Positions 7,998 through 34,828 are shown, counted from the stretch's first letter. The stretch is DNA of 64,000 nt from Hemiscyllium ocellatum (GCF_020745735.1 NC_083449.1:5368923-5432922); one strand, 5' to 3'. Translations and numbers: made by a program. Notes: generated by a model not told the origin, from the sequence alone.

Positions 7998-8013
7998 GGC
8001 TCTTTTCAGAGCC
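7998..8013 (+). terminator. Histone 3' stem-loop (H2A)
   Basis: CCAAA-GGCTCTTTTCAGAGCC, 3' flank GCTCA instead of ACCCA; HDE-like AAAGGAGCT downstream. Confidence 0.85.
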
Positions 8014-8144
8014 GCTCACGGCATCTGTGAAAGGAGCTTCCCTGTCTTCTCTACCGGATTTATTTTATTTTTAATGTGGAGAAGCTTGAACTTTATACCT
8101 GAGATTAGTCAATTATTATCGCCTTGTTATTGAATACTTTTGGT

Positions 8145-8605
8145 CTGGAGATGCTGATTATTGTATTGGGGTATAAAGTTAGAAATCATGCAACACCAGC
8201 TTATAGCCCAACAAGTTTGGTTGCAAGCACTAACTTTTGGAGCTTCCATCACGTGCTTGAACAACTGGTGTCACTTTGGCTCAGATAATGCCTTTCAGGT
8301 GTAAGCTGCCCTGTGTGATACTCTGCCACAATGGTCAGACTGATTCTAATCTAAAATGGATTTACAGATTCGTACAGCTTTTGAGTGAAATGCACACAGA
8401 TACTCCTACACTCACGGCGACTCTCCCTCATACGTTCACACATACTGTCCGTCAATCAGGCCTGCACCCTCACATTGACATACGCGTATACCTCTTTACA
8501 CTCGCGTGCACATACTCATACCCCCAACACACCCTACCCCGGCAAAACACACCCACGTGGTGAATTTATACTTGCAGAATGACAAATGTCCCCGATCGGG
8601 TATCA
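8145..8605. mobile_element. Degraded Penelope-like terminal repeat family B sequence
   Basis: ggagatgctg...aaagttagaaatc...caacaccagcttatag head and a CA-rich body resembling 23500-23660. Confidence 0.55.
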
Positions 8606-9425
8606 CATTCATTTTGACTGCATCAGGAAGAGCTGAATTGACCCAATGCAGTAAGCATACATCTGATATAGCAAATACTACTGGGCGCCCCTTATCCCTC
8701 TGCGCTTTGTTCACTAGTGTGTTTATAGACAGGCTTTCTTCTCTGCCCCTAGAGAGAGCGAGCATATTAAATGCCCGTGGGTGATTTCAGCTGTAAAGGA
8801 GGGAAAGGGGGTAAAGTGAGATTGTATGAACTGTACTTCTGTCATCGATAGACAAATCAACGCCTAAGTACATACGCATTCTCAACTGTGAAACTTCGCG
8901 GCCTTTTCGACATGTTAGCAGTTATTTCAAATTTGAAAGTGAGCCGTTGACCTTTTGGCGCCAATTCTATCCCGTCCCCATCAGTTAAATCCTGCAATCT
9001 ATTATAACAAAATCGGAGATCTCAGTAGTTGAAACTTGACTGCCGCTGTCTGTGACTTTCTTGTTAAACGACTCCCCATTAATGCTTTGCTCAGCACTTA
9101 TTGCACTTCCTAAAATACGATACCAACGTCCGCAAGCCACCAGTCGATCTCTTGGCGCCAAACCTTTCCCATCCCCCAACGACAAGCCATATGAAACCCT
9201 AGACAGAGCTCCCTCTCCCTAGATTCGCGGAAATTTAGAGTCCACTACCACAATGCGATGTTTACATTTCACAATCTGTCATAATAAATTCTGCGAACAC
9301 GAGAGATCTCATGACTTCACTGCACATGTCAATATTGCCTATAACTCATTCCGTTTTAATTCCTTAATTTATAATCATAATATTAATGTATCACATCACT
9401 TCCCGCCCTCTCTGGATGGTGTAGT

Positions 9426-9441
9426 GGCTCTGAAAAGAGCC
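9426..9441 (-). terminator. Histone 3' stem-loop (H3)
   Basis: Minus strand ACAAC-GGCTCTTTTCAGAGCC-ACTAC, purine-rich AGAGAGGG downstream. Confidence 0.9.
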
Positions 9442-9495
9442 GTTGTGTGTTTCTCTCTCTCTCGGGGTGAATGTGCAGGGCCGGCCAGGCTCCGT

Positions 9496-9975
<480 letters not shown>

Positions 9976-10213
9976 TTAAGGGAATGGAGAGCCCGCCCTA
10001 GAGCTGGGATTGGATACAGCCCTGTCCTTCAACCCACAGAGAAACAGCACCGGAAGGGACAGGAAAGGCAGGAAAATAATTGTTGGAGGCTGATTGGGTA
10101 ACGTGAAATGACAGTTGGCCAATTTCAAAATGCCCGCCGAATTTACCCCTCAAACCCTGAAATCAAATAACATATTAAGATATATTACGCCACTCGTCCG
10201 CAATTCAGATACT

Positions 10214-10450
10214 TTGTTGGCCGAGCTGGGAATTTGTGATGCAGATGTTTCGTCCCCTGTCTAGGTGACATCTTCAGTGATTGCGAGCCTCCTGTGAAGC
10301 GCTTCTATGATGTTTCCTCCGGCATGCTTGAGAGGCTCCCAAGCATATCACCTAGACAGGGAACGAAAAGTCTGCAACCCAAAGTCCCAGCTCGGCGAAC
10401 AGAACCACAACAACGAGCACCCGAGCTACAAATCGTCTCACAAACTTTGA
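10214..10450. mobile_element. Penelope-like terminal repeat family C, fold-back insertion with ~12-bp TSD
   Basis: Arms ~10215-10268 and ~10347-10401 are inverted copies; unpaired 3' tail to 10450; flanks aattcagatact / aattcggatact; hammerhead motif on the minus strand. Confidence 0.65.
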
Positions 10451-10994
10451 ATTCGGATACTAAGATATATTACTCGTCCGCAACTCAGATACTTTATAGC
10501 TTTCGATTAAAACCTAGTTGGCTGTCAGGGCAGACAGGAGGCGGGATTATTGCCTGATCTGTCTGTAACAGGCAGGAGGAAAGGCGGGGTTTAAAACAGC
10601 CCAGACAAACGGAACAGCCGAACGTCTACCCGCCGTTAATCAATCAAAACAACCCCGCCGTTTAAATATCTTGAAATTATACCAGGATAAAATTACAAAA
10701 GCCTACCAAATCGATGTTTTATTTTAACCAGGTTATAATCAGCCGAAACACAACTTAATGGCTGCCTGAACGGTCTGTAACAGGCACACGGGAAAAGCAG
10801 GCTATGAAAATATCCGCTGTGTCGCAGCATCAAAACTCATGAAAGTATCGTTTCTGGAAGGGTCAATGAAATACAAATACATCAGTGTCTGGGCAAAATG
10901 ACAAATGATACGTTAAAGAAACAGTACAGTAGCCCCTCCCTATGCGTTGCCTTCCCCGTCCTCAGGTCTCCGCTCTCTTTCGGAGGGTTTGGGT

Positions 10995-11010
10995 GGCTCT
11001 GAAAAGAGCC
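10995..11010 (-). terminator. Histone 3' stem-loop (H4)
   Basis: Minus strand CCCAAA-GGCTCTTTTCAGAGCC-ACCCA then GAAAGAGAG HDE. Confidence 0.92.
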
Positions 11011-11021
11011 TTTGGGTTTGC

Positions 11022-11342
<321 letters not shown>

Positions 11343-15688: not shown

Positions 15689-15820
15689 TCACAATGTCCA
15701 TGGACGGTTGGCATAAACGTTTCCCTCTTCATCTTGACCTGGGTCCTCATCCTCTCCCGTATCTTTGCGCCTCAGGGTGGCGTATGTGATGCAGGGTGGT
15801 TGCTGCTCTGCTTGGTCAGC
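15689..15820 (-). pseudogene. Terminal cytoplasmic exon ADQAEQQPPCITYATLRRKD...GNVYANRPWTL*
   Basis: Acceptor ctgttttcag; ITIM consensus I-T-Y-A-T-L and a second tyrosine motif NVYAN. Confidence 0.75.
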
Positions 15821-15859
15821 CTGAAAACAGGTCAATATGTAGTAGATCGGAGCAGGACC

Positions 15860-16730
15860 AATATTGGTGGCGTTGTGGACAGAAAATGTGATCGAAGAGT
15901 ACAATGGAAATTTGATCAACTGGGCCAGTGAGTCACAGAGTAGTAGAAGAAGTTTAATTTAATAAATGTGAGTGTTGCATTTTGGTAAGGCAAACCAGGG
16001 CAAGACCTATACTGCTTATTGTACAAGTCTAGGAAGTGTTTACGAACAAACAGACCTAGGGAGTGCACGTAGACAGTTCCTTAAATGTGGGATTGCATTT
16101 AGACACAATGGTGAAGGCGGCGTTTGGCATGCTTGCCTTCACTGGTCAGAGCACTGACGACAGAGGTTGGAGCATCATGTTACAGCTATACAGGATGTTG
16201 GTGAGGCCACTTTTAGAACACTGTGTGCAGTTCTGGTCAACATGCTGTGGAAAGGATGTTCTTAAGCTCGAAAGGGTACAGAAAACATTTACAAAGATGT
16301 TATCACAACTGTAGGGTTTGAGTTTTAAGAAGAAGCTGCATAATCTGGGAACTTTTCTCCCCTGAAGCATCAGAGGCTGAGGAGTGACCTTATAGAGGTT
16401 ATAAAATCACGAGGGGCATAGATAAGATAAATAGCTGTGGTCTTTTCCCCAGGGTAGGGGTGTCCAAAACAAGTGGGCATAGGTTTAAGGTGAGAGGGAA
16501 AGATTAAAAAGGGATCTGAGAGGTAAACTTATCACACAGAGGACGCTGCCAGAGAAAGTGATAGAGGCAGGTACAATGACAACATTTCAGAGACATTTGG
16601 AAAGGGACATGGATAAGAAAAGTTTAGAGAGATACAGGCCAAATGCAGACAAATGGGACTAGTTGAGTTTGGGAAACCTGGTCGGCATGGGCGAGTTGGG
16701 CTGAAGGGCCTGTTTCAGTGCTGTATGACT
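15860..16730 (+). mobile_element. CR1 3' fragment
   Basis: LHFGKANQG, LYRMLVRPLLEHCVQFWS, LERVQKTFTKML motifs and 3'UTR ending ctgtatgactc. Confidence 0.85.
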
Positions 16731-17799
16731 CGGTGAAAACAGATGAGAATAACAAACTTTGCCTGAAAGACAATCAGAGTGTACAGGAGGAGATGTGAAA
16801 ATATGGGGTCATAAGACAGACCAATTTCTCTTGGCAAAGCACATGACTGGAACAAGCCTAAAAGTGACCCTGACAAATGTTATTTCTCTGTACTCCGAAC
16901 AGGATGTGGTCATCTCTGCCAAGGTGGGAATTGGATGCAATTCCGAAATGTCCTTGAATCAATCGACTTGCTCAGCCAGAAGGCAGTGAAGAGTTTGCAA
17001 AGGGTTAGGAATCACGTGCAGAGCAGAGCGGGTAAGGAGGTCAGATTTCATTCCCTTAAGGATCATCACAGACAGGAACAGAAGGCCATTCGGCCCCTTG
17101 AGCCTGCTCAGCCATTCAATAGAATCGTGACTGATGCCCCATTCCTCACACTCACCTTTCTGCACTTAACATGAAACCCTCAATTCCCTGACTGATCAAG
17201 AACCTATCAATCCCAGCCTTAAACCTGCTCCCTGCCCCTTCACATCGCTCCCTGTGACAACCTTCTGAGAGAAGAAATTCCTCCTCGCCTCAGCCTTCAA
17301 CTTTGAACCAGATGGTTGTTTGTTCCTGACAACAGTCATCATTAGAGTCTTAACTCCAGATCTGTTTTTGATTAAAATTGAATTCCTTATTCACCACCTG
17401 CCACAGCAAGATTCACATTCACATCTCCAGGACATACCCTGGGGAGCTGAAAACATAGGATTTTGCTTCCACATTATTTCAGAAACACATCAAAAATTGT
17501 GAATCTCATCAAAATTGAAACCGGAATACATTGCCCACATCATTGAGCTAAACATCAATGTCGCCAAACTCCATACAGTGTGCGAAGAGACCATTCAGCC
17601 CATCCAGTCTGTGCCAATCCAGGGAAGAATATCCCACCCAGACCCTACTCCCATAACCCTGCATTAACCATAGCTAATCCTCCTAACCTGCACATCGTCA
17701 AATCCTACAGTGTGAAAGCAGGCCTTTCGGCCCATCAGGTCCATAATGATCCTCTGAATAGCATCCCACAGGACACACTACCCAACCCTGTCACTGTAA

Positions 17800-18040
17800 C
17801 CCTGCATTTCCCATGACAAACCCTCCTAGCCTGTATAACCCTCACACACTATTGGCAACTTCACATGGCCAATCCATCTAAACTGCACATCTTTGGACTG
17901 TGGGAGGAAACCAGAGCGCCCAGAGAAAACCCAGGCAAAGAAGGAGAGAATGTGCAAACTCCCAATAGACAGTCATCTGCGGCTGGGATTGTTGCTGGGT
18001 TCCTGGCGCTGTGAGGCAGCAATGCTAACCACTGAGCCAC
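17800..18040 (-). mobile_element. HE1-like tRNA SINE (paralog at ~40300-40540)
   Basis: Reverse complement gtggctcagtggttagcattgctgcctcacagcgccagg. Confidence 0.8.
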
Positions 18041-18067
18041 CCAATGTTTTTGCCACTGGCCATGTAG

Positions 18068-18290
18068 GGGTTGGTTAGCTCAGTTGATTCTATAGTTGGC
18101 TTTCAATGTATAGTCAGACTGACAGCATGCGGTTCAATTGCTGCTCTGGTTGAGATTGCTGTGAATAATCATTCCCTGTGCCTTAGATGTGGTGACCCTC
18201 AGGTTAAACCATAAAACAGTTGTTGCTTTTTCTCTCTGTCTCCCTCACACCTCTTTCTCCCTCTCTCTAATGAGACAATGGTGACTTTAC
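18068..18290 (+). mobile_element. Second tRNA-derived SINE family (also ~21833-22010, ~40570-40780, ~46674-46845)
   Basis: A-box TTAGCTCAGTTG and B-box-like GGTTCAATT followed by a shared gtgaccctcaggttaaacc body. Confidence 0.6.
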
Positions 18291-21200
18291 ATTAATCACC
18301 TGCTAAAAACATAACTTTGCTGATTAAAAATTAACTGCCTTCTTTTTCACTGCTTAGGTGTTTCCTTCCTGACACAGGATTTCAGTAAGCTGTAAATAAG
18401 ACATTTTACCAACAGTACATATCTAAATGAACTGGGAGAGGATGCACAGGGAGATTTATCAGCATATTGCCTTGGGGGCTGGAGAGTTTCAGTGAGGGAG
18501 AGAGATTGGACAGACTGGGGTTATTGTCCTTACAGCAGAGTAGATTGAACGAGAGGAATGTATAAAATGATGAGGGGTGAAAATAGGGTCGGCAGGGAGA
18601 AACATTCCCCCCTTGACGGAGGTGGGGCGAGGGGCACAGATTGAAGGTAAGGGCCAGGAGGTTTCGAGGGGATGAGAGGAAAATCTTATTCAAAAAGAGG
18701 TGGGAGAGGCAGAAACCGTCATCACTTTGAAGGAGGAGTTAGATGCGCACTTGTGACACCAAGGTTATGGGGCCAAGTACAGGGGAAATGGGATTAGGGA
18801 ACTGTGAGGTGGTTTTTCTCACCGGCACAGATTCGATGGGCCAATGGGTCTTTTTCTGGGCTGTAGACCTCTTGGAAACTATGACTAACCCATTTTGAGA
18901 TGTGAATTCCACATCCAAGATACCATCTAACCATAACATGATTTTGTACATTTCATGTTCAGAGATGAGGAGTTTGTTGTTGAAAAAAGAAATTGAGCAG
19001 TTTAGGCCAATACTCTCTGGAGTTGAGGAAGAGGGGAGAGCCAACTGAGGGATATAGGACGCTAAAGGGGGTGGGATTGACAAAGGAGACAGACAGAGTA
19101 TGTTTCCTCATGTGGGACAGTTTCGAATGAGAGGATCATTGTTTCAGGAGAATGGGGTGGGACAGATTGAAAACAGAGATGGTGAGGAAAGTCTTCTCTC
19201 CAAGGGAGATGAGGTGGGAATCTCTGGAAATTCACCCCCCAGTGTGTGGGGGCATATGGGGACACTGAATAAATTGAAGGAGGGGACCGACCGATTGTTG
19301 ATTAGTGAGGGCAGGAAATTGGAGTTGAGATTGTGATGAGATCAGCCACAGCTGTATAGAATGAGGGAAGCAGGGTTTCGAAGGCTCCTAGCCCGTATGT
19401 TGTGTTGGTGGTCCAGCTGCCCGAACACCTTTTAGTGTGGGCAACTCATAGCACATGCTCAGAAAGCTCTGAATCTGAGGGACTCAACTGTGTGCTGCAT
19501 CACAGTCGCTTCATCACTTAGCAACCAAGACTATATGATATAGCAACCATTCAGCCCAACAAGTCTGCTCCACCATTCCATCATGGCTGATATGTTTCTT
19601 AACCCCATTCTCCTGCCTTCTCTCTAGTGATCAAGAATCTCTGTCTTAAAGACATAATTACAGCCGTCTGCAGTAATGTTTTCCATAGATTTCCCACTGT
19701 CTGGCTGAAGAAACTCCTTCTCATTATGGAACTAGGTCAAGGGGCTGAATGGCCTCCTTCTACTCCTTTATATGAATATTCCACAATAATAAATCTTGGA
19801 ACCCCTGCAGTTACAAAGTGGCACTTTCACACACCAGAGCAATTAGTGATTTCAAATAGAAACCACAAGTCCAAATATTTTATTTTCACATGTTCCAGAT
19901 TCCCACCATCTTCTGGGGGAAACAATCTTCAAATCCCTCCTTAAACCTCTTGTCCTTCACTTTAAAATGATGTCCCCCTTGTTACTGATCTTTCGACTAA
20001 GGGAAACAGCTGCTTCCTGTCCCCCTGTCCATGTCCCTCATAACAGAGTCAGAATCACACAGCAAGGAAACAGACCCTTCAGTCCAACTACTCCATGCCG
20101 TCCATAATCTCAATCTAAACTAGTCCCACTTGTTTTCACTTGGCCCATATCTCTCCAAACCCTTCCTATTCTTGGACTTACTTAAATGTCTTTTAAACAT
20201 TGTAACTGTCCTCATACCTGCCACTTCCTCTGAAAGTTCAATCCATACATGAACCACTCTCCGTCAAAAAAATGTTACCCATCATGTCATTTTCAAAAAT
20301 ATGTCCCCTGGTCTTGAAGTCCCCCCACCCTTGGGAAAAGACACCTGCCATTCACCTCATCTATGACTATCGTGATTTCATAAACTTCTATATCCCTCAA
20401 ACTTCTACCCTCCAGTGAAAATAGTCCCAGTCCTTATAACTCAGATGCTCCATTCCCAACAACATTCTGATATATCTTTTCTGAATCCTCTCCAACTTAA
20501 TAATGTGCTTCCTCCAACAGGGCAACCAGAACTGGACACAATACACCAGAACAGGCTTCACCAGTGTCCTGTACAACCACAACAGGGTGTCCGAACTCCA
20601 AAACTCAATTGTGTGAACAATGGAGGCAAGTGTTCTAAACACCTTCTCAAACACCCTGTTTACCTGTGACACAAAATACGAAGAAGTGTGTACCTGAAAC
20701 CCTAGGGTTCTTTGCCCTACACACTACCGATCTTTCACACCTCTATCATGTCCCCCTCCCCCATCAACCTTCTCTGTTGCAAAGGAAACAACCCAAACTT
20801 CCCTCCAATGTTTCCAGGAAGAGATTTATTTTTGCGGAACTTCCCAATCAGACAAATACCAATACATGATGGTGTAAGATCAACAGCTCACAGATTCATA
20901 CTCATCGTTCAATCGAATTGACTCGATTTCCCACCGTCTCCCTTGGAAGGAAATATTTCCAGACCATTACCCAACCAAGTTCCAATCCCGCTCACAACAA
21001 CAATTTGCTGCTGTTCATGTATGAAAACCCCTGGCAACAAGGTCACTGAGCCATGGTCCCAAGGAATGACCTCTTGGAATTGTCCAGAATGTGGCTCAGA
21101 ACTTCTACGTTCACAGAATCACAAAATGTTACTGCACAGTAGGAGGCCATTCGTGTCTGTACCAGCTCCTGAAAGGGCAATCCAGCTAGACCCACTTTCC

Positions 21201-22581
21201 AGCCCTATCTCCGTAGCCCACGTATCCCTTTTAAATTTCTATCCAGCTCTCTTTTCGATCCTCCTATGGAATCCACCTCCACCACTCTCCCAAGGAGCAC
21301 ATTCCAAACCCAACAACCCAAATAAATTTTTCCTCATCTCACTCTCACTGGCAATCTTGAAATTCTGACCAGCCAATTACTAATTGACCAATGAGTGAGA
21401 AACAACAACTTTCTTTCCCCCTGTCATAATTGTTGATAACTTTCAACATCTCAATAAGGTCAACACTTCATCTTCTCTGCTTGAAAGAGAATAAGCTCAA
21501 TCTCTTCAACCACTCCCTCTATCTGAAATCCCTCATCGTCAGTATCATTCTCATAAATCTCCTTCACACTGTCTGCAGGGTCTGAACAGCCTTCCTTAAG
21601 TAAGGTGTCCAGAACAGAACAGAACCAGCCTGTGTAACAGAAGGCCAACTCCCTTTGTCAAATGTATTTCTAAATTCAGCTTCTGTTGCCTGTGAAGGTA
21701 AGGTGTTACACACATACACAGAAATACCCAACAGATCAAAGGCTTATCTCCAATATGATCTAATATTCTCCATTCAATATTTGTGCTATCACTGGAATTA
21801 ATTTCTTTTCTGCTCTGTACTTTGTTTTGGATGTTGGGTTAGCTCAGTTGGCTGGATGGCTGGTTTGGAATATGGAGTAACATCAACAGCGTGGGTTTGA
21901 ATCTCTCACTGCCTGAGGTTACCATGAAGGACTGTCCTTCTCCACTCCTCCCCTTGTGTGAGACATGGTAACCCTCAAGTTAAACTACCACCTACCAGTT
22001 ATCACTCTGTCTCTCTCTGACACTCCAACTGAGGTCCACCAGGAACTGTTGGAAGAATCAGCTGAAGAAAATGAGAGAGAAACAACATGGGAAAGTTTTA
22101 CTATAAATATTCAGCTTCTCCTGCTTGCAAATGAATCTGGATTCCTTGACCGATGCGCAAGCAACAATTATTCCAATTTTAATCTTTAGTTTATATCTGG
22201 GCTGACCACTCCTCTGAACACAACACATTACATTGTATATCTCCCCAAGTAATTTCATCTGCCACTTGTTCAGCCTGCCCACATCCTCACAAAGCACGTT
22301 CCCACAGTGTTTTATTATTTGTTTTTAAATTAACTTGTGGATTGTGGAAATCATTGGCTGGGCTGAGAATTTATTATCCATCCCTCGTTGGCCACTTGAG
22401 AAGGAGTTACTGAACTGCCTTCTTGAACCATTGCAGTCCCTGTGTTGTAGGTAGACTCACAATACCATTAGAGAGGGAATTCCAGGATTTTGACCCAGCA
22501 CCATTAAATGAATAGCTAATATATTTCCAAAGTTAAAAATCACAACACCAGGTTATAGTCCAACAGGTTTAATTGGAAGTA

Positions 22582-22616
22582 CACTAGCTTTCGGAGCAAT
22601 GCTCCTTCATCAGGTG
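22582..22616 (-). ncRNA. Minimal type I hammerhead ribozyme motif (family B)
   Basis: CAC-CTGATGA-A-GGAGC-ATT-GCTCC-GAAA-GC-TA-GTG: complete core, stem II and stem I. Confidence 0.7.
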
Positions 22617-23506
22617 ATAGTGGAGGGCTCGATCGTAACATAGAATTTATAGCAAAAATTTGTAGTGTGATGTAACTGACATTACACATTGAAAAATTGA
22701 TTGTCTGTTAAGCCTTTCATATATTAGAATACAGTGATAGTCTCACTTCTTTCATGTGTAAATCACAAAACCCTTCTTTTTAAAGTTGCATTCTTGGGTT
22801 AGCTGCTAACAATGGTGATAGCTAGACAATATGTTGAAGGTGTTGGCCCTCTGTGTTCTCTGTCTATGACCTGATGTTGAGATTGATTCTAATCTAAAAA
22901 GTGAGATAACAGAGTTTTATATAAATTCATGCAGTTTTTGAGCTCAGAGTTCTACATGAATGTATGCAGTTTTTGAGCAAAGTGCAATGTAACTCTGCAA
23001 GTACAAATTCACCCCACAAAATATATGTGTGCATGTGGGTCTTTATCTGTCTCTGTGTGTCTGTCTGTGTGGGATGGGGGTTGTGAGTGTGAGAAAGTGT
23101 GTGTGTGTGTGTGTAGTGAGTGCAGAGTGTCTTAAGTCTGTGAGTGGGTGCATGTCTGAGTGTGGGAGTGTGTGTGTCTATAAGGATGTGTGTGGGTGTC
23201 TGTGTGCGCGTCTGTGTGTACCTGTGTCCATGTAGTGCAATGGTGATCACCGTAATGTGACATGAACTCAAGGTCCCGGTTGAGACCTTCCCGATGGGTA
23301 CCGAACTTAGCTATCAGCCTCTGCTTGGCCACTTGCCTCTGCTGCCTGTCCCGAAGTCCACCTTGGAGGATGGTCACCCGAAGGTCCGAGGCTGAATGTC
23401 CTGGACCTCTGAAGTGTTCCCCAACTGGGAGGGAACCCTCCTGTCTGTTGATTGTTGTGCGGTGCCCATTCATCCGTTGTCGTAGCCTTTGACACTCTGC
23501 ACTCAC

Positions 23507-23543
<37 letters not shown>

Positions 23544-24021
23544 TCTCACACTCACAACCCCCATCCCAGACAGACAGACACACACACACAGACAGACAAA
23601 GACCCACATGTACACATGTATTTTGTGGGTGAATTTGTATTGCAGAGTTACATTGCACTTTGCTCAAAAACTGCATACATTCATGTAGAACTCGGAGCTC
23701 AAAAACTGCATGAATTTATGTAAAACTCTGTTATCTCACTTTTTAAGATTAGAAACAATCTAAACATCAGGTCATAGACAGAGAACACAGAGGGCTAACA
23801 CCTTCAACATATTGTCTAGCTATCACCATTGTTAACAGCTAACCCGAGAATGCAACTTTAAAAAAAAAGTTTTGTGATTTACACATGAAAGAAGTGAAAC
23901 TATCACTGTATTCTAATAGATGAAAGGCTTAACAGACAATCAATTTTTCAATGTATAATTTCAGTTACATCACACTGCAAATTTTTGCTATAAATTGTGT
24001 TACGATCGAGCCCTCCACTAT

Positions 24022-24056
24022 CACCTGATGAAGGAGCGTCACTCCGAAAGCTAGTG
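24022..24056 (+). ncRNA. Minimal type I hammerhead ribozyme motif (family B, mirror copy)
   Basis: CAC-CTGATGA-A-GGAG-CGTCA-CTCC-GAAA-GC-TA-GTG. Confidence 0.7.
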
Positions 24057-24158
24057 TGCTTCTAATTAAACCTGTTGGACTATAACATGGTGTTGTGTGA
24101 TTTTTAACTTTGTACACCCCAGTCCAACACCAGCATCTCCAAATCAATATATTTCCAA

Positions 24159-24445
24159 GTTGGGATGGTGAGTGGCTGAGGGGGAAACTTGCAAGAGGTG
24201 GTATTCTCATGTATCTGCTGTCCTTGCCCTGCGAGGTGGAAGTGGTTGTGGGTTTGGAAGGTGCTACCTGAGAACCTTTGGTGAATGTCTGCAGTGAACC
24301 TCAGGTGGTACACACTGCTGCTACTGAGCACAAGTGATGGAGAGAGTGGATGGTGTGGATGTGGCGCCAATCAAGCAGAGGCTGTGTTGTCCCTGGATGG
24401 TGTTCGGCTTCTCAAGTGTTGCCTACAAGGTGCACTGCAGAAGTG
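24159..24445 (-). mobile_element. LINE (CR1/L2-clade, second family) 3' end, continuous with ~22330-22530 across the Penelope insertion
   Basis: Minus strand encodes TLEKPNTIQ...LIGATST, resembling a LINE RT C-terminus; related copy at ~43190-43545. Confidence 0.55.
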
Positions 24446-24676
24446 AGTGAGTATGTATTGCGTGCATGTAATAGCATGTGTGAGTGTCAATGAGAATGTA
24501 CGTGTCTCTCTCTCTCTCTCACGCACACACATGCACACCTTCATACTGTTACCCAAACACCGTTCCACTTATACTCTCTCATACATACACCCTCATACGC
24601 TCTATGTGAGCAACATGAGTTTGAAACCCAAGTGGAGCAGGATCACCAGTGTTACCTGCTGGAATGTCTCACCCAC

Positions 24677-24778
24677 CTTGTTTCCTGTTCTGGAGTTTAA
24701 TTGGAAGCAATGTGACGAGAGAAAGGGTCAGAAACATTGGGACAATGAGTACTCCCATCTCAGTACTGTGTTCCTGTG
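24677..24778 (-). pseudogene. Transmembrane exon (phase 1-1): AQEHSTEMGVLIVPMFLTLSLVTLLPIKLQNRKQ
   Basis: atccag acceptor, G|GTGGGT donor, 102 nt, ~20 hydrophobic residues followed by a basic stop-transfer. Confidence 0.75.
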
Positions 24779-26015
24779 CTGGATTCAGACAAAGATTTCT
24801 TGTCAATAACATCATTCCTTCAGCAAACAAACATCAACCCCAGTGTTTTCTGTTCCCTGTTGCCCTGACTCTCTGCCAACACTGGTCCATTTGGATGGAA
24901 ACCCTTGTGTCTGTGAATGTCATTCCAAACCCTCACCATTGCAATGACATCACTGTTTCTGTGCAGCCTGTCTCAATAACAACATCCCACCAATCCAACC
25001 CAGACTATTCAATGCTAAACTCAAAAGATCACTCTGCATCCACTTTCTCTAAATTGTTGACTGGAAATTATTGTCCCTCATTTTCACTGCCGAGATATAG
25101 TGAGGCAAAACTTCCCTGTGTCGTTCACCTGTCAGCGGCAACTAGGCCATTCACAGAGAAACATTGAAAATATCATTGGGAGGCCATTCAGCCCCTCCAG
25201 CCGGCTTCGCCCATTCAATGGGATCATGGCTGATTACCCAACTTCGTCCTGTGCCTCCCCGCGCTCTCCCTTTCGCTCCAAAAACTCTATCCAACTCCTT
25301 CCTGAACAACATTCAGTGTTCTGGCCCTGACTGCTTTCTGTGGCACAGAATACCATAGGCTCCCCACTCTCTGGGTAAAGATATTTCTCCCCATCTCAGT
25401 CTTGTCGCGTCTCCTTTAGACAGTGACCCCCTGGTTCTGGCCTCTCTCCCTGGCACTGGGAACACCCTCCCTGTGTTTACTCTGTCTTGCCCTTGTTCAA
25501 ATTTAATAGATTTCTATGAGATTCACCCTTAATTCTTCTCAACTTCAGTGAATATCATCCTAACCGATCCAGTCTGTCTCCACCCGTCAATCCTGCTATC
25601 CCAGGGATCGCTCTGGGAAACTTTTGCTGCACTCCCTCCATAGGCACAATGTCTTTCCTCGGATAAGGAAACGCCAAACTGCACACAGGTCTCCAGGGTG
25701 TGGTCTCACCCTGTCCAATTGTGGCAAGCCATCCCTGCTCCAGGACTTGAAACGTCTCACTGTGAAGGTCTCCCTTATCTGAGCAAGGATGTTACACTCT
25801 CTCCTCTCTTCCCCCACACAGCTGCTGCCCGACCTGCTGAGTTTTTCCAGCACTTTCTGTGTTTAGAACTGCAACATTAACTCGGTCTCTGTCTCTCTCC
25901 ACAGATGCTGCCAGACCTGCTGAGTGTCTGAGGCAATTTTTAGGGTGTTCATGTCAAGTCTTCAGCTGCACTCAAATGAAGAATGAGCATGGATCATCGA
26001 TGAAGAGTGGATTAC

Positions 26016-26316
26016 CTAGCACCGTGAGGTCAATGGAATTACTGGTCACATTAAATATCATTTCACTGGGACCCCTGTTGGTCACGAGACACTGGTACCG
26101 GCCTTTGTACTGGGACTGAAAGGATTCAATGGCATTCTGTCCTGTCTGAGCTAGAGTTGTAATTCCCACTGGCATTGTTTAAGGCTTTCTGTTGAAAGTA
26201 CCATTGAAAGTAGGGTCCAGTACCTCGGCTCAATACACACTCTGGAACGAGACAACTCCCAATCAGAAACACTGTTTTATTGGCTCTGGGGGTGAGGAAA
26301 ATCCTAGCAACAGGAA
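26016..26316 (-). pseudogene. Membrane-proximal Ig-domain exon with a frameshift
   Basis: ttgttttgttccag acceptor, G|GTAATC donor; PVARIFLTP...ECVLSRGTGPYFQWYF.../AIESFQSQYKGRYQCLVTN...IDLTVL; 301 nt, 2 nt short of an in-frame length. Confidence 0.85.
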
Positions 26317-26552
26317 CTGGAACAAAACAAGACAAAGAGGAAATGAAAGATCGGACGCTGAAATTGTCTCTTTTGTCACAATGTTACCTTCAATCACAGG
26401 ATAATAATTGATGGAAAGGAGAAATAAAACAAGTGAGATTTCACATCATCGCAAAGTCTCCTTATGTTGTAAAATCTACACTTTGAAAGATTTGTGCTGT
26501 GTTAACTATGGATGGCCAAATGGTACATAATCCAACATCTCGATGTTCAATG

Positions 26553-26746
26553 GTGTTACCATCACTGTCCCTACCCCACTGCACTATCAACATCCTAGGG
26601 GTTACTGTCACTGTCCCCACTCTCTTCCCATGATCAGCATCCTCAGGGTTACTATCACTGTCCCCACCTCCGCTCCACTATCAACATCCTGAAGGTTACC
26701 ATCACTGCCCCCACCCTCTTCCCACTCTCAACATCCTGAGGGTTAC
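26553..26746 (+). repeat. Minisatellite, 4 units of ~47 bp (left half of an array split by an LTR)
   Basis: gttacYRtcactgtcccca...cactatcaacatcct...gg repeated. Confidence 0.85.
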
Positions 26747-28488
26747 TGTTGGGAAAGTTGACATGGTTTGCTTGGAAGCCATTTTCCTAATCCGGCTGAG
26801 AAACCATTTTGTGTCTCCAGAACTTTGCTGGCTGTGCATTCCTTACTCTTAGGAAGGTAAGGCCTATCTTTCATGTTACCCAAGGTGTCAAGTTAGTGTT
26901 TTTACCACTTTGATGAATGATCAGGGCAGGCTGTAGAATGAGTCAAGTGGACATAGACTTGTCAATTAGTTCCATTTCCTTTCCGAGTTATTGCCACTTC
27001 ACGGTCATTCAGCTAATTAGGGACATCTCTGCTTAGTATGAGCAATCGGTGTAAATACTTGTGGAATGCATAATAGACAATAGGTGCAGGAGTAGGCCAT
27101 TCTGCCCTTCGAGCCTGCACCACCATTCAATATGATCATGGCTGATCATCCTTAATCAGTATCCTGTTCCTACCCTTGATTCCACTATCCTTGAGAGCTC
27201 TATCCAATTCTTTCTTAAATGAATCCCGAAACTGGGCCTCCACTGCCCTCTGGGGCAGAGCATTCCACACAGCCACCACTCTCTGGGTGAAGAAGTTTCT
27301 CCTCATCTCTGTCCTAAATGGTCTACCCCGTATTTTTAAGCTGTGTCCTCTGGTTCGGCACTCACCCATCAGTGGAAAATGTTTCCTGCCTCCAGAGTGT
27401 CCAATCCTTTAATAATCTTATATGTCTCAATCATATCCCCTCTCAGTCTTCTAAACTCAAGGGTATACAAGCCCAGTCGCTCCAGTCTTTCAGTGTAAGG
27501 TAGTCCCGCCATTCCAGAAATTGACCTCGTGAACCTACGCTGCACTCCCTCAATAGCCAGGATGTCTTTCCTCACATTTGGAGACCAGAACTGCACACAA
27601 TACTTACAGGTGTGGTCTCACCAGGGCCCTGTACAGCTGCAGAAGAACCTCTTTGCTTCTATACTCAATCCCTCTTGTTATGAAGGCTGGATGCTATTAG
27701 CCTTCTTCACTACCTGCTGTACCTGCATGCCTACCTTCATTGACTGGTGTACAAGAACACCCAGATCTCTTTGTATTGCCCCTTTACCTAAATTTATTCC
27801 ATTTAGGTAGTAATCAGCCTTCCTGTTCTTGCCACCAAAGTGGATAACCATACATTTATCCACATTAAACTGCATCGGCCATGCATCTGACCACTCACCT
27901 AACCTGTCACCCTGTAATCTAACATCCTCCTCACATTTCACACTGCCACCCAGTTTAGTCTCAACAGCAAATTTACTAATGTTATTACTTATACCATCTT
28001 CCATATCATTAATATATATTGTAAAAATCTGCAGTCCCAGCACTGATCCCTGCAGTACCCCACTGGTCACTGCCTGCCATTCTGAAATGGAGCAGTTTAT
28101 CACTATCTTTGTTTCCTGTCAGCCAACCAACTTTCAATCCAAGTTAGTACTTTGCCCCCAATACCATGCGCCCTAATTTTGCTCACCAACTTCCTATTTG
28201 GGACTTTATCAAAAGCTTTCTGAAAGTCCAGGTACACTACATCTACTGAATCTCCCTCTTCCACCTACAGAGTTTGAGTGCTTAGTTTTGACCCTAATGA
28301 CTAACCTGTAATTTAGTACTGTTAATCAATGCTCAGCCCCTATCTGCTTTTTCTATATAATCCTGTAGTATCCTGATGTATATCTGAATAGCACTGAGCC
28401 ACAGTTAGGATGGTGAAATCCCCATGATATATCCTGTAATAAACTAATCAGTTCTCAAAGTCTGAGTCTTCAACAGTTTTCTTCAACA
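26747..28488 (+). mobile_element. Solo LTR (~540 bp) with 5-bp TSD, interrupted by a CR1
   Basis: Ends TGTTG...CAACA; TSD GTTAC at 26742-26746 and 28489-28493; TATATAA ~28354 and AATAAA ~28438. Confidence 0.7.
27070..28271 (-). mobile_element. 5'-truncated CR1 (RT plus 3'UTR)
   Basis: VTSGVLQGSVLG, ISKFA, FNVDKCMVIHFG, QRDLGVLV, QFWSP, VQRRFTR motifs. Confidence 0.9.
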
Positions 28489-28705
28489 GTTACCATCACT
28501 GTCCCCATCCCCACTATCAACATCTTGGGGGTTACTGTCACTGTCCCCATGCCCACTATCAATATCCTGGGGGTCACTGTCCCCATCCCCACTATCAACA
28601 TCCTGGGGGTTACTGTCACTGTCCACCCCTACCCTACTGTCAACATCCTGGGGGTTACCATCAGTGTTCCCAATCCCATCATACAATGAACATCTTTGGT
28701 GTTAG
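28489..28705 (+). repeat. Minisatellite, ~5 units of 36-47 bp (right half of the array)
   Basis: gttactgtcactgtccccatccccactatcaacatcctgggg repeated. Confidence 0.85.
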
Positions 28706-29698
28706 CATCAGCCTCCCCTAGCTTGTATTGTCTAAAGTTTCTACCCTTCTCTGGTGGATTGCTTAACAAGGAATTGTAGGTCAGAGGTCTACAGCACAGA
28801 AACAGGATCTTCAGCCGACTGAATCCATGCCAATCAAAAGCAACCAACTTTATTCTTGAATATAAATTTTCCTTGTCATAGGGTCATACAGTACGGAAAT
28901 AGACCCATCGGCCCAACGCGTCCACGCTGACCAGGTCTCACAAACGAAACTAGCCCCATTTGTTTGCATTTAGCCCACATCCGTCCAAACCTTTCCGATC
29001 CATGTAACTTTCCAAATCTCTTTTCGATGTTGGTATTGTACCCACTCCCATCACTTCCTCTGGCAGCTCATTCCAAATATTCACCTCCATCTGTGTGAAA
29101 ATGTTACCCCTCTGGTCGCTTTTAAATCTTTCCCCTCTCACCTTAAATCAATGCCGTCTAGTTTTGGACTCCCCCACCCTACGGAAAAGACCTTGGCTAT
29201 TCACCTCAACCAAGCCCTTATTTCTGCAGGAAAATACAAGTGAAACGTCAAGGATTACTTAATCTGACTCTATCCTAGCACGTGCACATCTAAATCTTTC
29301 TTCAATGTGATGAGGATTTCTGCCTCCTTCACCCTTACAGGCAGTGAGTTCCAGATTCCCCAGCACCCTCTGGGTGAAAATGTTTTCCCTCACATCCCCC
29401 TCGAAACTCCCGCCTCTTACCTTCAATCTATGCCCCTCCCCCAGTCATTGATCTCTCCATCAAGGGGGGAAAAGCTTCTTCCTGTCTACACCCATTATTT
29501 TATACATCTCAATCACGTCACCACACTCAATCTCCTCTGCTCTCAGGAAAACAACCACAGTCTGTCCAATCACTCTCCAACAGTGAAACTGTCCAGCCCC
29601 CAAGGCAACATCCTGATAAATCTGCCTCTGCACACTCCCCCAGTGCTATCACATTGCTCAGATAATGTGGATTTGTACAGAGTCACTTACAAACTTAC

Positions 29699-29972
29699 TG
29701 ATCACTGAAACTGCGAGGAATTTGCTGTCCAGGAGAGACTCTGCATGCTGGTTAGAAACAACACAGTGATAATTGTCCTCTTGATGTTTGCTGATGTTGA
29801 TGATTGTGTGTACGGCTCTGCTGTGGTTGGAATATTCCCAGTAAATCCCCTCACCATCCTCGTAGAAAATATATTGAATTGGGGTCAAGCCAAGCGATTT
29901 AAAAGGGTGCTGTCTCCCTCCACTACCGCGTTTCCAGGTGGGCACTCAGCTCTAGGACTGACACAGGAATGC
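29699..29972 (-). pseudogene. Ig-domain exon with two frameshifts
   Basis: aatcacag acceptor, A|GTAAGT donor; IPVSVLELSA / PPGNAVVEGDSTLLNR / PIQYIFYED...NYHCVVSN...LAVSVI; the IPVS start and PIxYxFY strand are typical of FCRL/PECAM Ig domains. Confidence 0.8.
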
Positions 29973-31236
29973 CTGTGATTAAACCAAACTGTCCGGCACT
30001 TTTCTAAGGCAGGAATTGTTGTTCTCAGCAACAAACAGTACTCTCACCATACAGTCAGAGAGAGTTACAGGGTCACAGAGAGTCAGAGGGTCATAAACCA
30101 CATCCAAGCACAGCATAGAACAGGTCTGTTGGCCCACGATGTTGTGCCGAGGTTTAATTCTAATGTAAAATATAGTAACTTAACCTACGCACCCCTCAAC
30201 TCACTGCTATCCATGTGCATGTCCAGCAGTCGCTTAAATGTTCCTAATGATTCTGCTTCCGCTACCACAGCTGGCAATGCATTCCATGCATTCAAATCTC
30301 TCTGCGTAAAGAACCTATGTCTGACGTCTCCTTTATACCTTCCCCCTATATCTTCAAACTATGACTCCTCATACCAGTCAATCCTGCCCTGGGTATATGT
30401 CTCTGGCTATTGACTCTATCCATTCCACTCATTATTTTGTGCACATCCGTCAGGTCTCCTCTTTTCCTCCTTCTCTCCAGAGAGAAAAGTCTGAGCTTAT
30501 TCAACTTTTCTTCACAATACAAGCGGTCCAGTCCAGGCAGCATCTTGGTAAATCTTCTTTGCACCCTCTCCAAAGCCTCTGTATCTTTCCAATAGTAGGG
30601 CGACCAGACGTGGACACAATATTCCAAGTATGGTCTCACCAAGGACTTGTAGAGCTGCAGCAAAACCTCGCGGCTCTTAAACTCGATCCCCCTGTTAATG
30701 AAAGCCAAAACACCAAATGCTTTCTTACAACCCTATCCACATGGGGGGCAACTTTGAGAGATCAATGTACTTGCACACCCAGATCAGACTGTTCTTCCAC
30801 ACTGCCAAGAATACAGTCTTTAATCCTATATTCAGCATTTGAGTTTGACCTTCCAAAATGCATCACTTTGCATTTATCCAAATGCATCTGCCATTTCTCA
30901 GCACAGCTCTGCATCCTGTCTATGTCGCGCTGCAGCCTGCAGTAGCCCTCTATACTATCAATGACACCTCCAACCTTTGTGTCATCTCCAAATTTACTAA
31001 CTCACCCCTCAACCTCCTCATCCAAATCATTTATAAAAACTACAAAGAGCGGAGGCCCGAGAACAGAACCCTGTGGTACCCCACTCAACACTGACCTCCA
31101 GGCAGAATACTTTCTATCTACAACCACTCTCTGCCTTCTGTCAGCTAGCCAATTCTGAATCCAGATAGCTAAATCTCCCTGCATCCCATACTTCCTGACT
31201 TTATGAATGAGTCTACCACAGGGAACCTTATCAAAT

Positions 31237-31577
31237 TGATAAGGTGTGACTTGATAGAGGTTTATAAGATGATCAGAGGAATAGATAGAGTAGACAGTCA
31301 GAAACTTTTTCCCCGGGTACAACAGAGTATTACAAGGGGACATAAATTTAAGGTGAAGGGTGGAAGGTATAGGGGAGATGTCAGGGGTGGGTTCTTTACC
31401 CAGAGAGTGGTAGGGGCATGGAATGCGCTGCCCGTGGCAGTGGTAGAGTCAGAATCATTGACGACCTTTAAGCAGCAATTGGATAGGTACATGGATGGGT
31501 GCTTAATCTAGGATAGATGTTCGGCACAACATCGTGTGCCGAAGGGCCTGTTCTGTGCTGTATTGTTCTATGTTCTA
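31237..31577 (+). mobile_element. Short CR1 3' end inserted in opposite orientation into the large CR1
   Basis: [11 protein letters not shown]...WNALP; tail tgttctatgttct; host accttatcaaat/gccttgctg resumes after it. Confidence 0.85.
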
Positions 31578-33938
31578 AAATGCCTTGCTGAAGTCCACAT
31601 ACACCACATCGACTGCTCGACCATCATCGACCTGTCTTGACACCTCCTCAAAGAACTCAATAAGATTTGTGAGGCATGAGCCTGCCCCTCACAAAGCCAT
31701 GCTGACTGCCTTTAATCACACTATGCCTTGTCAAATAGTCATAAACGCTATGTCTCAGAATCCTTTCCAAAGCTTTGCTGACCACAGACGTAAGACTGAC
31801 TGATCTGTAATTGCCAGCGATTTCCCTATTACCCTTCTTGAAAAGAGGTACAGCATTCGCCTCCTTCCAATCCTCCGGTACCACTCCTGTGGAGAGGGAG
31901 GAGGCAAATATCCTTGCCAGCTGCTTAGCAACCTTTCTTTCTCGCTTCCCGGAGCAGCCTGCAATAAATCTGGTCTGGCCTGGGGGACTTATCAATCTTA
32001 ATGTTTTCCAAAATTTCCAGCACATCAACTTCATCAATCTTGATCTGGTCAAGATCCCATCTCCTCTAAGTTTTCATTTACAACAAGTTCCCTTTCCTTG
32101 GTGAAAACCAAAGGCAAAAAACTCATTTGCAGCTTCCCCGATCTGCTCAGATTCCATGCACAAGTTCCCTACGCTATCCCTGATCGTTCTCTTATTCCTC
32201 AAGTATGAGTGAAATGCCTTTCAGTTATCCCTAATCCTTCTTGCCAAGACTTTTTGTGCCCCCTCCTGGCTCTCCTCAGTCCTTTCTGAGCTCCTTTCTA
32301 GCAAGCCTGTAATCATCTAAAGCTGTGCTAAATTCTTGCTTCCTCCACCTTACATAAACTGCCTTCTTCCTTTTGATGAGAAGTTCCTCTGTTCTCATCA
32401 TCCAAGGTTCCTTAATCTTACCCCTTCTTACCTGTCACAGAGGAACAAATATGTGCATCACTCACAACAACTGCTCCTTAAATCGTCTCCATATGTCTGC
32501 TGTGCCCTTTGTGTGGAACAATTGCTCCCAGTCTGTACTGCCCAAATCCTGTCTGATAGTGTCATAATTTCTTTTTCCCAATAAAATATCTTCCCTCGGT
32601 AACTGCTCCTTTTCCACTCCAAGGCTTTGCCAAACATGAGGCAGTTATCACTTTCACCAAAGTGCTCTCCCACCCCGAGAGGTGATACCTGCCCTGGCTC
32701 ATTGCCGAGCACCAAATCCAAAATGGCCTCTCCCCTTGTCATGCTGTCTACATACTGAGTTAGGAAACCCTCCTGAATATACCTGACAAAAATGGCTCCA
32801 TCCAAACCATCTGCACTTAGTAGGTTCCAGTCGATATTGGGAAAGTTGAAATCATCCATAACAACAACCCTGCTACCTCTGCATTTTTCCAGAGACTGTC
32901 GGACTATGAGATCTTCAATCTCTCTACTGCTATTAGGTGGTCTGTAGAAAACCCATAATGCGATGGCTGTGCTCCTGCTGTTCCAAACTTCCACCCATAC
33001 TGACTCAGTAGACAAACCTTCCTTTTCATCCTTCACTTCAGTAGCTGTGATGCACTCTCTGATTAGCAATGCTTCACCCCTCCTCTTTATCCACCCTCCC
33101 TTTTCTTTTAAACGTTCTAAACCCTGGAATACCAAGCAACCATTCCTGCCCCTATGGAACCCACGTCTCCATTATGACCACAATATCATAGCCCCAAGTA
33201 CTGATCCATGCTCTAAGTTCGTCACTCTTATTTCAGACACTCCTTGCATTAAAGCAGACACACTTTAACTGATCCCTTTGTTTCAAGGTGTAAAAAACCT
33301 TCCGGATAGATTCAATACATCCTGTCACTGCCCTGTCTGCAACTGACCTCCTCTCAGACATGTGGCTCTGATTCCCACCTGCCTGCCAAACTAGTTTAAA
33401 CCCTCCCGAATCACACAAGCAAATCTCACAGCCAGGACATTTGTACCCCTCCAGTTCAGGTGCAACCTGTCCTTCATGTACAGGTCCTACCTTCCCCAGA
33501 AGGTACCCCAATGGTCTAGGTATCTGAAGCCCTCCCTTCTGCACCAGCCTCATAGCCACGTGTTAAGCTGCATTCGCTGACAGTTCCTCATTTCTCTATC
33601 TCATGGCATCGGTAGCAAACCTAAGCTCACTACTCTACTTGTCCTGCTCTTCAGCTTCCAATCTAACCTTTCAGATCCTCAATCCCTTTCCTGGCTATAT
33701 CATTGGTGCCAACATGTACCACGATTTCTGGTTGCTCACCCTCCTTCAGAAACCCGATCGGGGACAGCCTAGACCCTGGCACCAAGGAGGCAACATACCT
33801 TCCGGGAGTCCTGTTCCTGACCACAAAATCTCCTGTCAATCCATCTAACTATTGAGTCCCGTACCACTCGTACTTTTCTATTTTCCCCCCTGCCCTTCTG
33901 AGCCACAGTGCCAGAGACCTGGCAAGTATGATTTTCTA

Positions 33939-34828
33939 GGAGAAAGTGAGGACTGCAGATGCTGGAGATCAGAGCTGAAAATGTGTTGATGGAAAGGCGC
34001 AGCAGGTCAGGCAGCATCCAAGGAGCAGGAGAATCGACGTTTTGGGCATGAGTCCCTCTTCAGGAATGAGGAGAGCGTGCCAAGCAGGCTAAGATAAAAG
34101 GTAGGAAGGAGCGACTTGGGGGAGGAGCGTTGGGAATGCGATAGGTGGAAGGAGGTTAAGGTGAGGGTGATAGGCTGGAGTGGGGGTGGGGGCGGAAAGG
34201 TCAAGAAGAAGATTGCAGGTTAGGAAGGTGGTGCTGAGTTCGAGGGTTGGGACTGAGACAAGGTGGGGGGAGGGGAAATGAGGAAACTGGAGAAATCTGA
34301 GTTCATCCCTTGTGGTTGGAGGGCTCCTAGGCGGAAGAAGAGGCGCTCTTCTTCCAGCCGTCATGTCACTATGGTCTGGCGATGGAGGAGTCCAAGGACC
34401 TGCATGTCCTTGGTAGAGTGGGAGGGAGAGTTGAAGTGTTGAGCCATGGGGTGGTCCACCTCATCTTCCGCCTAGGAACCATCCAACCACAAGGGATGAA
34501 CTCAGATTTCTCCAGTTTCCTCACTTCCCCTCCCCCCACCTTGTCTCAGTCCCAACCCTCGAACTCAGCACCACCTTCCTAACCTGCAATCTTCTTCCTG
34601 ACCTCTCCGCCCCACCCCCACTCCAGCCTATCTCCCTCACCTTAACCTCCTCCCACCTATCACATCCCCAACACCCCTCCCCCAAGTCCCTCCTCCCTCC
34701 CTTTTATCTTAGCCTGCTTGGCACACTCTCCTCATTCCTGAAGAAGGATTCATGTCCGAAACGTTGATTCTCCTGCTCCTTGGATGCTACCTGACCTGCT
34801 GTGCCTTTCCATCAACACATTTTCAGCT
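33939..34828. mobile_element. Penelope family A fold-back insertion (~370-bp arms), ~14-bp degenerate TSD
   Basis: Minus copy 33939-34455 with tail, plus copy 34456-34828 without tail; flanks caagtatgattttc / caagtaaggttttc. Confidence 0.85.

Follow-up and report, generated by a model that had tools for sequence, protein, structure and literature searches.

A probable pseudogene from a shark family of Fc receptor-like, putatively inhibitory receptors, with a sister fragment, beside a histone gene quartet in Hemiscyllium ocellatum

The described receptors closest to the gene relic reported here are the Fc receptor-like (FCRL) proteins and, more weakly, PECAM-1 (CD31). A survey published in 2014 found no FcRL homologs in cartilaginous fish (PMC4016189), and a 2024 single-cell atlas lists fcgr1a-like, fcrl3, and fcrl5 among the highly expressed genes of bamboo-shark B cells (PMC11372145). 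In our literature search we found no paper describing the shark FCRL-like family treated below, which public annotation lists only under automatic names that do not agree with one another (FCRL2-6, PECAM-like, FcγRI-like). The subject of this analysis is a stretch of 64,000 nt from Hemiscyllium ocellatum (NC_083449.1:5368923-5432922, referred to as the window), in which an initial annotation had pointed to a dead FCRL/PECAM-like receptor gene scattered among repeats. We conclude that positions 30062-11554 on the minus strand very probably represent a non-processed pseudogene belonging to an orectolobiform-shark subfamily of Fc-receptor-like inhibitory receptors. This relic, referred to as copy B to distinguish it from a second fragment (copy A), is the 3' two-thirds of a receptor gene, comprising exons 6-14 and the 3' flank, while its 5' part is gone.

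As the reference we used a locus of Stegostoma tigrinum (CM060552.1:12706876-12753405, referred to as L001) with an intact 660-aa gene, in which 14 exons (E1-E14) were mapped. This gene (XP_059498322, P0080, automatically named "Fc receptor-like protein 4 isoform X1") consists of a split leader (E1 of 34 nt and a mini-exon E2 of 30 nt), five immunoglobulin (Ig) exons, all of phase 1, encoding domains D1-D5, a transmembrane (TM) exon with an alternative acceptor, and six tail exons (E9-E14). Its tail carries FDYAEI in E10, TVYSSV in E11 (in the form of an immunoreceptor tyrosine-based switch motif, ITSM), LVYSVI in E12 (in the form of an immunoreceptor tyrosine-based inhibitory motif, ITIM), and, in E14, ITYATL (again of ITIM form) together with NVYANL (YxN). 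A second 46-kb copy in Stegostoma (L002; XP_059497893, P0081) lies 239 kb from the first and is 99.4% identical to it; located at 12.71 (L001) and 12.47 Mb (L002) of CM060552.1, the two go back either to a segmental duplication of very recent date or to duplication in the assembly, and each has, at 4.5-6.7 kb, a long array of tandem repeats of ~42 nt. The intact paralogs presupposed by the initial annotation do exist, as exactly the exons in question are spliced together in genes of Stegostoma (XP_059498322), of Hemiscyllium itself (XP_060712749, P0087), and of Chiloscyllium (P0083 and P0090).

Window positions 30062-11554 align with L001 20699-40059 in one long colinear minus-strand series (blastn). 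With shark proteins (P0067, P0068, P0069, and P0071) as queries, tblastn matched the Ig exons at E 1e-25 to 1e-35, the TM exon at 1e-10, and the terminal exon at 1e-14, and also located two far-upstream tail exons at 44.4 and 42.8 kb, which belong to copy A discussed below. A family hidden Markov model (HMM) matched pieces of open reading frames (ORFs) in the window at E 5e-28, 2e-24, 5e-17, 2e-10, and 8e-10. By these two lines of homology to intact shark genes, the exons proposed on the minus strand are real. The exon order and single strand of the family are kept, with E9, E10, and E13 recovered by nucleotide colinearity rather than by protein match. The relic exons share 70-78% amino acid identity with intact shark proteins; at the nucleotide level, identity to Stegostoma is 79-85% in exons and 74% in introns. 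Because the colinearity runs through exons, introns, and 3' flank, we are dealing with a gene copy that has introns, and neither with a processed copy nor with a chance set of motifs.

A 95-aa piece of the distal Ig domain, compared by HMMER with 1.84 billion representative proteins, gave 62 matches, of which the specific ones were shark proteins. The best of them (P0002, Stegostoma XP_059498327, "Fc receptor-like protein 6 isoform X6") agrees at 46% over the whole piece and at ~70% over the true domain, and others, automatically named FCRL2, FCRL3, or FCRL5, come from Mustelus, Heterodontus, Heptranchias, Cetorhinus, Pristiophorus, and a stingray. A follow-up search brought in near relatives from orectolobiform sharks, which go by the names "FCRL4", "FCRL5", "PECAM-like", or "FcγRI-like". 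Pfam, applied to the raw ORF pieces, gave sub-threshold Ig_2/Ig_3 matches for one piece and none for the others, since it is too insensitive for such frameshifted half-domains. When the window's own pieces were compared with the window by tblastn, no paralogous Ig or ITYATL exons were found.

Lesions were called by exon-by-exon alignment to the Stegostoma locus, both pairwise and three-way. The architecture first read from the window (two phase-1 Ig exons, a TM exon, short cytoplasmic exons, and a terminal exon with ITYATL) aligned to L001 in all its parts, with coordinates right within 1-2 nt, and each of the lesions listed with it proved to be there, in some cases with small refinements. All exons of copy B are on the minus strand. 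Exon 6 (29972-29700), which encodes the distal Ig domain (D4, IPVS...PIQYIFY...YHC), is of phase 1, keeps its acceptor AG and donor GT, and can be read by eye at 29.9 kb as ...PIQYIFYEDGEGIYWEYSNHSRAVHTIINISKHQEDNYHCVVSN...; it is frameshifted by a 1-nt deletion near 29938 and a 10-nt deletion after 29893, and the suspected loss of its first cysteine is a TGC>CGC change (Cys>Arg) at 29896-29894. Exon 7 (26316-26016), for the membrane-proximal Ig domain (D5, PVARIFL...YFQWYF...YQC), is likewise of phase 1 with both splice sites kept, and its frameshift is due to a single 2-nt deletion near 26136; the relic at 26.2 kb reads PVARIFLTPRANKT...ECVLSRGTGPYFQWYF... and continues in another frame as ...GRYQCLVTNRGPSEMIFNVTSNSIDLTVL. 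Exon 8 (24799-24676) encodes the stalk and the TM segment LIVPMFLTLSLVTLLPI followed by the stop-transfer sequence KLQNRKQ; its ORF is intact (E ~1e-10), and the segment matched by tblastn at 24.7 kb is PAQEHSTEMGVLIVPMFLTLSLVTLLPIKLQNRKQ. The main acceptor of this exon is changed from AG to AA, while the alternative acceptor at 24778, which is the choice of the X2 isoforms, and the donor are kept. The piece at 20909-21046 had been considered a (poor) TM candidate and is rejected as such, the true TM exon being the one at 24799-24676 and the 20.9-kb piece being tail exon 10.

In the tail, exon 9 is a remnant (22061-22042) of the first 20 of 31 nt with its acceptor kept; unrelated repeat DNA stands in place of the rest of the exon and its donor. 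In the exon 10 remnant (20941-20906), the deletion originally put at 55 nt measures 56 nt against Stegostoma and 55 nt against copy A, which is itself 1 nt shorter; this deletion removed the FDYAEI tyrosine motif, and the donor reads AT instead of GT at 20905-20904. Exons 11 and 12 (TVYSSV and LVYSVI) have no counterpart in copy B, in which a breakpoint at 19632-19805 (minus strand) corresponds to L001 29024-32505, i.e., ~3,500 nt. Exon 13 (18389-18358) has an in-frame TGA at 18384-18382 and an 8-nt deletion just downstream, which together make up the previously noted stop and deletion at 18336-18389, and its donor is also lost (GT>CT). The terminal exon 14 (15820-15689) is open, with acceptor and stop kept, and encodes ADQAEQQPPCITYATLRRKDTGEDEDPGQDEEGNVYANRPWTL (...CITYATL...NVYANRPWTL before the stop), thus retaining the ITIM ITYATL and the YxN motif; the piece found at 15.7 kb reads ...QQPPCITYATLRRKDTGEDEDPGQDEEGNVYANRPWTL up to the stop. 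Beyond it, the 3' flank of copy B (15412-11554, minus strand) is colinear with the 3.5 kb that follow the Stegostoma gene (L001 36891-40059).

At the other end, gene homology stops at 30062, 90 nt upstream of exon 6, and the leader and D1-D3 exons were not found anywhere in the 64-kb window, either by tblastn or when all ORF pieces of at least 12 aa in six frames were searched with the family HMM. A long interspersed nuclear element (LINE) occupies 30233-33135 on the minus strand, with an endonuclease at 32458-33135 and a reverse transcriptase at 31005-31448; its 3' end is ~170 nt upstream of the point where receptor homology stops, and it may be a trace of the event in which the 5' exons were lost. 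Two candidates for further 5' remnants were rejected. A D2-like tblastn match at 61552-61484 (E 4.3) is within a repeat and has no support from the family HMM, and a match between L001 ~19994-20118 and window 33952-34057, although correctly oriented for a remnant of intron 5, is a multi-copy repeat.

Taken together, copy B retains introns and a 3' flank colinear with the Stegostoma gene and combines them with frameshifts, a stop, splice-site losses, and exon deletions, amounting to at least 10 independent lesions in the pairwise and three-way alignments. It cannot make a receptor: the leader and D1-D3 are gone, neither of the remaining Ig exons keeps its reading frame, a structural cysteine has been replaced in one of them, and of the tail exons two are missing and three broken. 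The full architecture of the subfamily is a leader, five Ig domains, a TM segment, and a tail with 4-5 tyrosine motifs; copy B lacks the leader, D1-D3, E11, and E12 and is damaged in five exons, so it is a pseudogene member of the subfamily and not a functional one. The missing 5' exons, the altered E8 acceptor, the broken E9, the missing E11 and E12, and copy A at 38.5-48 kb add to what the initial annotation had described. In protein trees the relic falls into one clade with P0080, P0090, P0083, P0087, and P0089 at 100/100 support, against P0092/P0093 and Mustelus, and its end branch is 0.23-0.28, as compared with 0.04-0.21 for the intact genes. This placement, along with the disabling lesions, bears out the proposal of a dead member of a shark ITIM receptor family. 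That the family is expanded holds in a modest sense, as there are at least two subfamilies in orectolobiform sharks and relatives in Mustelus, Heterodontus, Heptranchias, Cetorhinus, and a stingray. Copy B is an ordinary pseudogene of a known but poorly studied shark family, intact relatives of which are already predicted in public shark genomes.

Several points weigh against this reading or narrow it. Non-coding transcription of the relic may occur, and the inhibitory function of the receptor family is deduced from its motifs only. Over 269 codons, the relic and Stegostoma differ by a synonymous divergence (dS) of 0.29 and a nonsynonymous divergence (dN) of 0.145, which gives a ratio (ω) of 0.50, whereas a purely neutral pair is expected to give 1; the lower value is expected if only one of the two lineages was unconstrained, and it gives no date of inactivation. 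As to the exact sister gene of the relic, the approximately unbiased (AU) test did not decide between the candidates, giving p 0.37 for the relic with C. punctatum P0090 and p 0.26 for the relic with the Hemiscyllium/Chiloscyllium clade, and the free tree pairs it weakly with Stegostoma (49/64). The divergence, ω, and branch-length figures fit a long neutral decay and do not tell a lost ortholog from a partial duplicate that was dead on arrival.

Copy A (38509-47987, minus strand), the older and more fragmentary of the two, consists of tail exons 10, 12, and 13, each of them broken independently. Its exon 10 (44480-44388; REVMGNRAEGMSEDRPA.../...YAEIRSSALN) is frameshifted by a 1-nt deletion with its splice sites kept; its exon 12 (42868-42804; DSETDSSLVYSVCTIS), also with splice sites kept, has a 1-nt deletion and a change of the ITIM +3 residue from Ile to Cys (LVYSVC vs. 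LVYSVI); and its exon 13 (40888-40857) is open with the donor changed from GT to AC. No Ig, TM, E9, E11, or E14 exons were found in copy A. Positions 38509-42234 and 43759-44414 align with copy B at 16027-19724 and 20295-20930, with 79% identity (BLAST). Over 2,479 ungapped three-way columns, the Kimura two-parameter distances are 0.17 between A and B, 0.34 between A and L001, and 0.32 between B and L001, and 432 sites unite A with B, as compared with 137 and 166 for the two alternatives. From this site support and these distances it follows that the duplication that gave A and B came later than the separation from the lineage of the Stegostoma gene, at about half that depth. On these alignments, the two copies are sisters, each with later lesions of its own, so that their decay was independent. 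In a 730-nt block upstream of exon 10 (46137-46857 vs. 21287-22015), identity between A and B is 86%, clearly above the 79% elsewhere, which is due either to gene conversion in this patch or to a shared repeat insertion of younger age.

With the two copies in view, the origin of copy B can be considered. One possibility, which we entertain with some doubt, is a unitary pseudogene, in which Hemiscyllium's own ortholog of C. punctatum XP_072420101 (P0090) or of the Stegostoma-type gene was once complete and functional, lost its 5' exons in a LINE-associated rearrangement, and then decayed. Such a loss would account for the finding of two subfamily genes in C. punctatum (P0090 and P0089) and of the P0089/P0087 type only in Hemiscyllium. 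The relic also shares "LSAHPG" with P0090/P0071, to which its best D5 and TM identities are found as well; its grouping with P0090 is not rejected by the AU test, the LINE stands close to the 5' breakpoint (~170 nt), and the exons are somewhat better conserved than the introns. However, the grouping with P0090 has no tree support above that of other placements, and an end branch of 0.23-0.28 is large for confamilial orthologs, given ~0.05 for the orthologs P0087, P0089, and P0083. The other origin, which seems to us about as probable as its opposite, is a partial duplicate that was dead on arrival: a segmental duplication would have copied no more than the stretch from intron 5 through the 3' flank (B) and, at a later time or as a separate event, a block of tail exons (A), and neither would ever have encoded a receptor. 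Both copies are indeed partial, they are sisters with different boundaries, and no 5' exons are present in the whole 64 kb. Truncation would be explained equally well by later deletions and insertions of transposable elements, and the preservation of the E6, E7, and E14 splice sites and of the E8 and E14 ORFs, along with the ω of 0.5, fits a period of constraint, though constraint in a single lineage could explain it.

By contrast, the idea of a functional gene whose lesions are errors of assembly or sequencing is effectively refuted. Taken alone, the single 2-nt deletion of E7 or the 1-nt deletion of E6 would be compatible with sequencing error, but the independent defects number more than 10 and include deletions of 10, 56, and ~3,500 nt, the Cys>Arg change, the in-frame stop, the loss of three splice sites, and the absence of five 5' exons, in a window free of N runs. 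Whichever way copy B came about, the pseudogene and its sister fragment make this locus a small graveyard of gene copies, the outcome of birth-and-death turnover in the receptor family, beside a quartet of histone genes.

The intact members are type I membrane proteins with an ectodomain of five C2-type Ig domains that would bind a ligand. By analogy with FCRL and PECAM-1, engagement of the ligand would lead to phosphorylation of the tail tyrosines, and those of ITIM and ITSM type would then recruit SH2 phosphatases and dampen activation. Judging from the tail motifs and this analogy, the intact members should be inhibitory, or dual, immunoreceptors.

The label "FCRL/PECAM-like" was a fair hedge, because the automatic names at NCBI switch among FCRL2-6, PECAM-like, and FcγRI-like; its FCRL part stands, now on more than motifs, and its PECAM-1 part is the weaker one. 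The N-terminal half of the relic D5 matches human FCRL5 in the PDB at E 5e-18, at the membrane-proximal repeats, and the C-terminal part of D4 matches FCRL5 at E 0.0025. The intact Stegostoma protein matches FCRL5 in the PDB at 7e-51, followed by FCRL4, CD64, FcεRIα, FCRLA, and CD32, while Pfam returned only generic Ig families for it and an ESM Atlas look-up of the D5 N-terminal half only generic Ig clusters. For D4-D5, an AlphaFold model based on an alignment of 11 family sequences (predicted confidence, pLDDT, 79) was compared with Swiss-Prot by Foldseek; FCRL3, FCRL2, FCRL5, and FCRL1 take ranks 1-5 (E 5e-13 to 2e-11, 21-26% identity), and PECAM-1 D5-D6 appears at ranks 10, 11, and 25 (E ~7e-11 to 3e-10, 20-22% identity, TM-score 0.74).

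A counterpart of PECAM-1 rather than of FcR/FCRL is improbable in our judgment. It would agree with the "PECAM-like" names given by NCBI to the Hemiscyllium and C. plagiosum genes, with the alignment of a tuatara PECAM over the Ig domains (23-35% identity), with the Foldseek match of PECAM-1 D5-D6 to the D4-D5 model (E ~7e-11, TM-score 0.74), and with a tail of many short exons with ITIM and ITSM motifs, which in general terms resembles that of PECAM-1. Nevertheless, the FCRLs rank above PECAM-1 in the fold comparison, and PECAM-1 is absent from the best 60 of 85 PDB matches of the intact protein, a sequence comparison that is weak on this point because the PECAM-1 entries in the PDB are, to our knowledge, N-terminal domains only. 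A PECAM-1 counterpart would be expected to have six C2 Ig domains, a PECAM-type tail with an ITIM and ITSM pair, and best reciprocal similarity to PECAM-1, whereas the intact shark homolog has five Ig domains, and its tail shows no detectable similarity to that of the tuatara PECAM, the one PECAM compared. The linkage to histone genes described below also recalls human FCGR1A at 1q21 and not PECAM1. Since both the PDB sequence matches and the Foldseek ranks favor the FCRLs, the shark family is filed as FcR/FCRL-like on sequence and modeled fold, with a weaker resemblance to PECAM-1.

A core-histone quartet occupies 5497-11336, 4.3 kb downstream of exon 14. It comprises an H2B gene on the plus strand at ~5.5-6.0 kb and an H3 gene on the minus strand at 9.5-9.97 kb, both of which look intact, an H2A-like ORF on the plus strand (7476-7964) with no obvious ATG in the usual place, and an H4 gene on the minus strand (11022-11333) followed by a canonical 3' stem-loop at 10970-11015 (Rfam RF00032, Histone3, 36.5 bits). 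In Stegostoma, L001 and L002 lie under a gene model for which Pfam gives matches to the histone fold. In human, FCGR1A and HIST2H2BF share a common locus at chr1:149.88 Mb (PMC10449685). That the adjacency in the window reflects an ancient linkage of FcR/FCRL genes to a replication-dependent histone cluster, as for human FCGR1A and HIST2 at 1q21, is a conjecture we think rather unlikely to hold, and the linkage is a suggestive lead for conserved synteny with human 1q21-23. If the ancient linkage is true, sharks carry true orthologs of the FcR/FCRL locus, contradicting an origin of FcRL only in bony fishes (PMC4016189), and duplication of a histone-cluster unit would be one engine that scatters FCRL fragments. 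Elsewhere in the window, an ORF of 399 aa (35910-37109, plus strand) in a GC-rich stretch at 34-38 kb has a GIY-YIG-like motif (IIYCIHCTRCGLLYIGETG) at its end, a feature to be expected where the endonuclease of a Penelope-like retroelement is encoded; the ORF has no Pfam match at E 0.01.

The pseudogene itself is of little weight, being one more dead copy from a fast-turning immune receptor family. Its value is in documenting birth-and-death turnover, with partial duplicates and independent decay, in the shark FCRL-like ITIM receptor family. The parts worth following are the receptor family and its histone-cluster linkage; the histone quartet offers a cheap synteny handle on orthology to the tetrapod FcR/FCRL locus.

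Compared with known systems, PECAM-1 shares with the shark family a chain of C2 Ig domains, a tail spread over many short exons with ITIM- and ITSM-type motifs, and the D5-D6 fold, but it ranks below the FCRLs, has six instead of five Ig domains, and differs in its tail, as far as the one PECAM retrieved is concerned. Human FCRL2, FCRL3, and FCRL5, which give the best sequence and fold matches, are closer. Their membrane-proximal C2 Ig domains, like those of the shark family, have a "VPVS.P.L" start and a "G.PPI.Y.FY" C strand; each domain has its own phase-1 exon, the tail with its ITIM-type tyrosines is spread over several exons, and the leader is split, as it is in the intact Stegostoma gene. 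The human proteins differ in that identity is only 21-26% and in the leader mini-exon, which is canonically 21 nt in FcR/FCRL genes and 30 nt in the shark gene. Closer still are the Stegostoma genes (XP_059498322 and XP_059497893), with which copy B shares phases and splice-site positions for E6, E7, E8, E10, E13, and E14 (69-73% amino acid identity) as well as colinear introns and 3' flank at ~74% identity; these genes are intact with 14 exons, whereas in copy B E1-E5, E11, and E12 are absent and breaks affect E6, E7, E9, E10, and E13. Finally, the Hemiscyllium gene XP_060712749 ("PECAM-like isoform X1") and its Chiloscyllium orthologs P0083 and P0089 fall into the same subfamily clade (100/100), reach up to 78% identity in the D4 exon, and share the tail end ADQAEQQ.CI[IT]YATL...NVYANLPRTL. 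Unlike the relic, XP_060712749 is intact, has several predicted isoforms, and forms with its orthologs a tight clade of their own that leaves the relic outside, and it may be the living paralog of the relic in the same genome.

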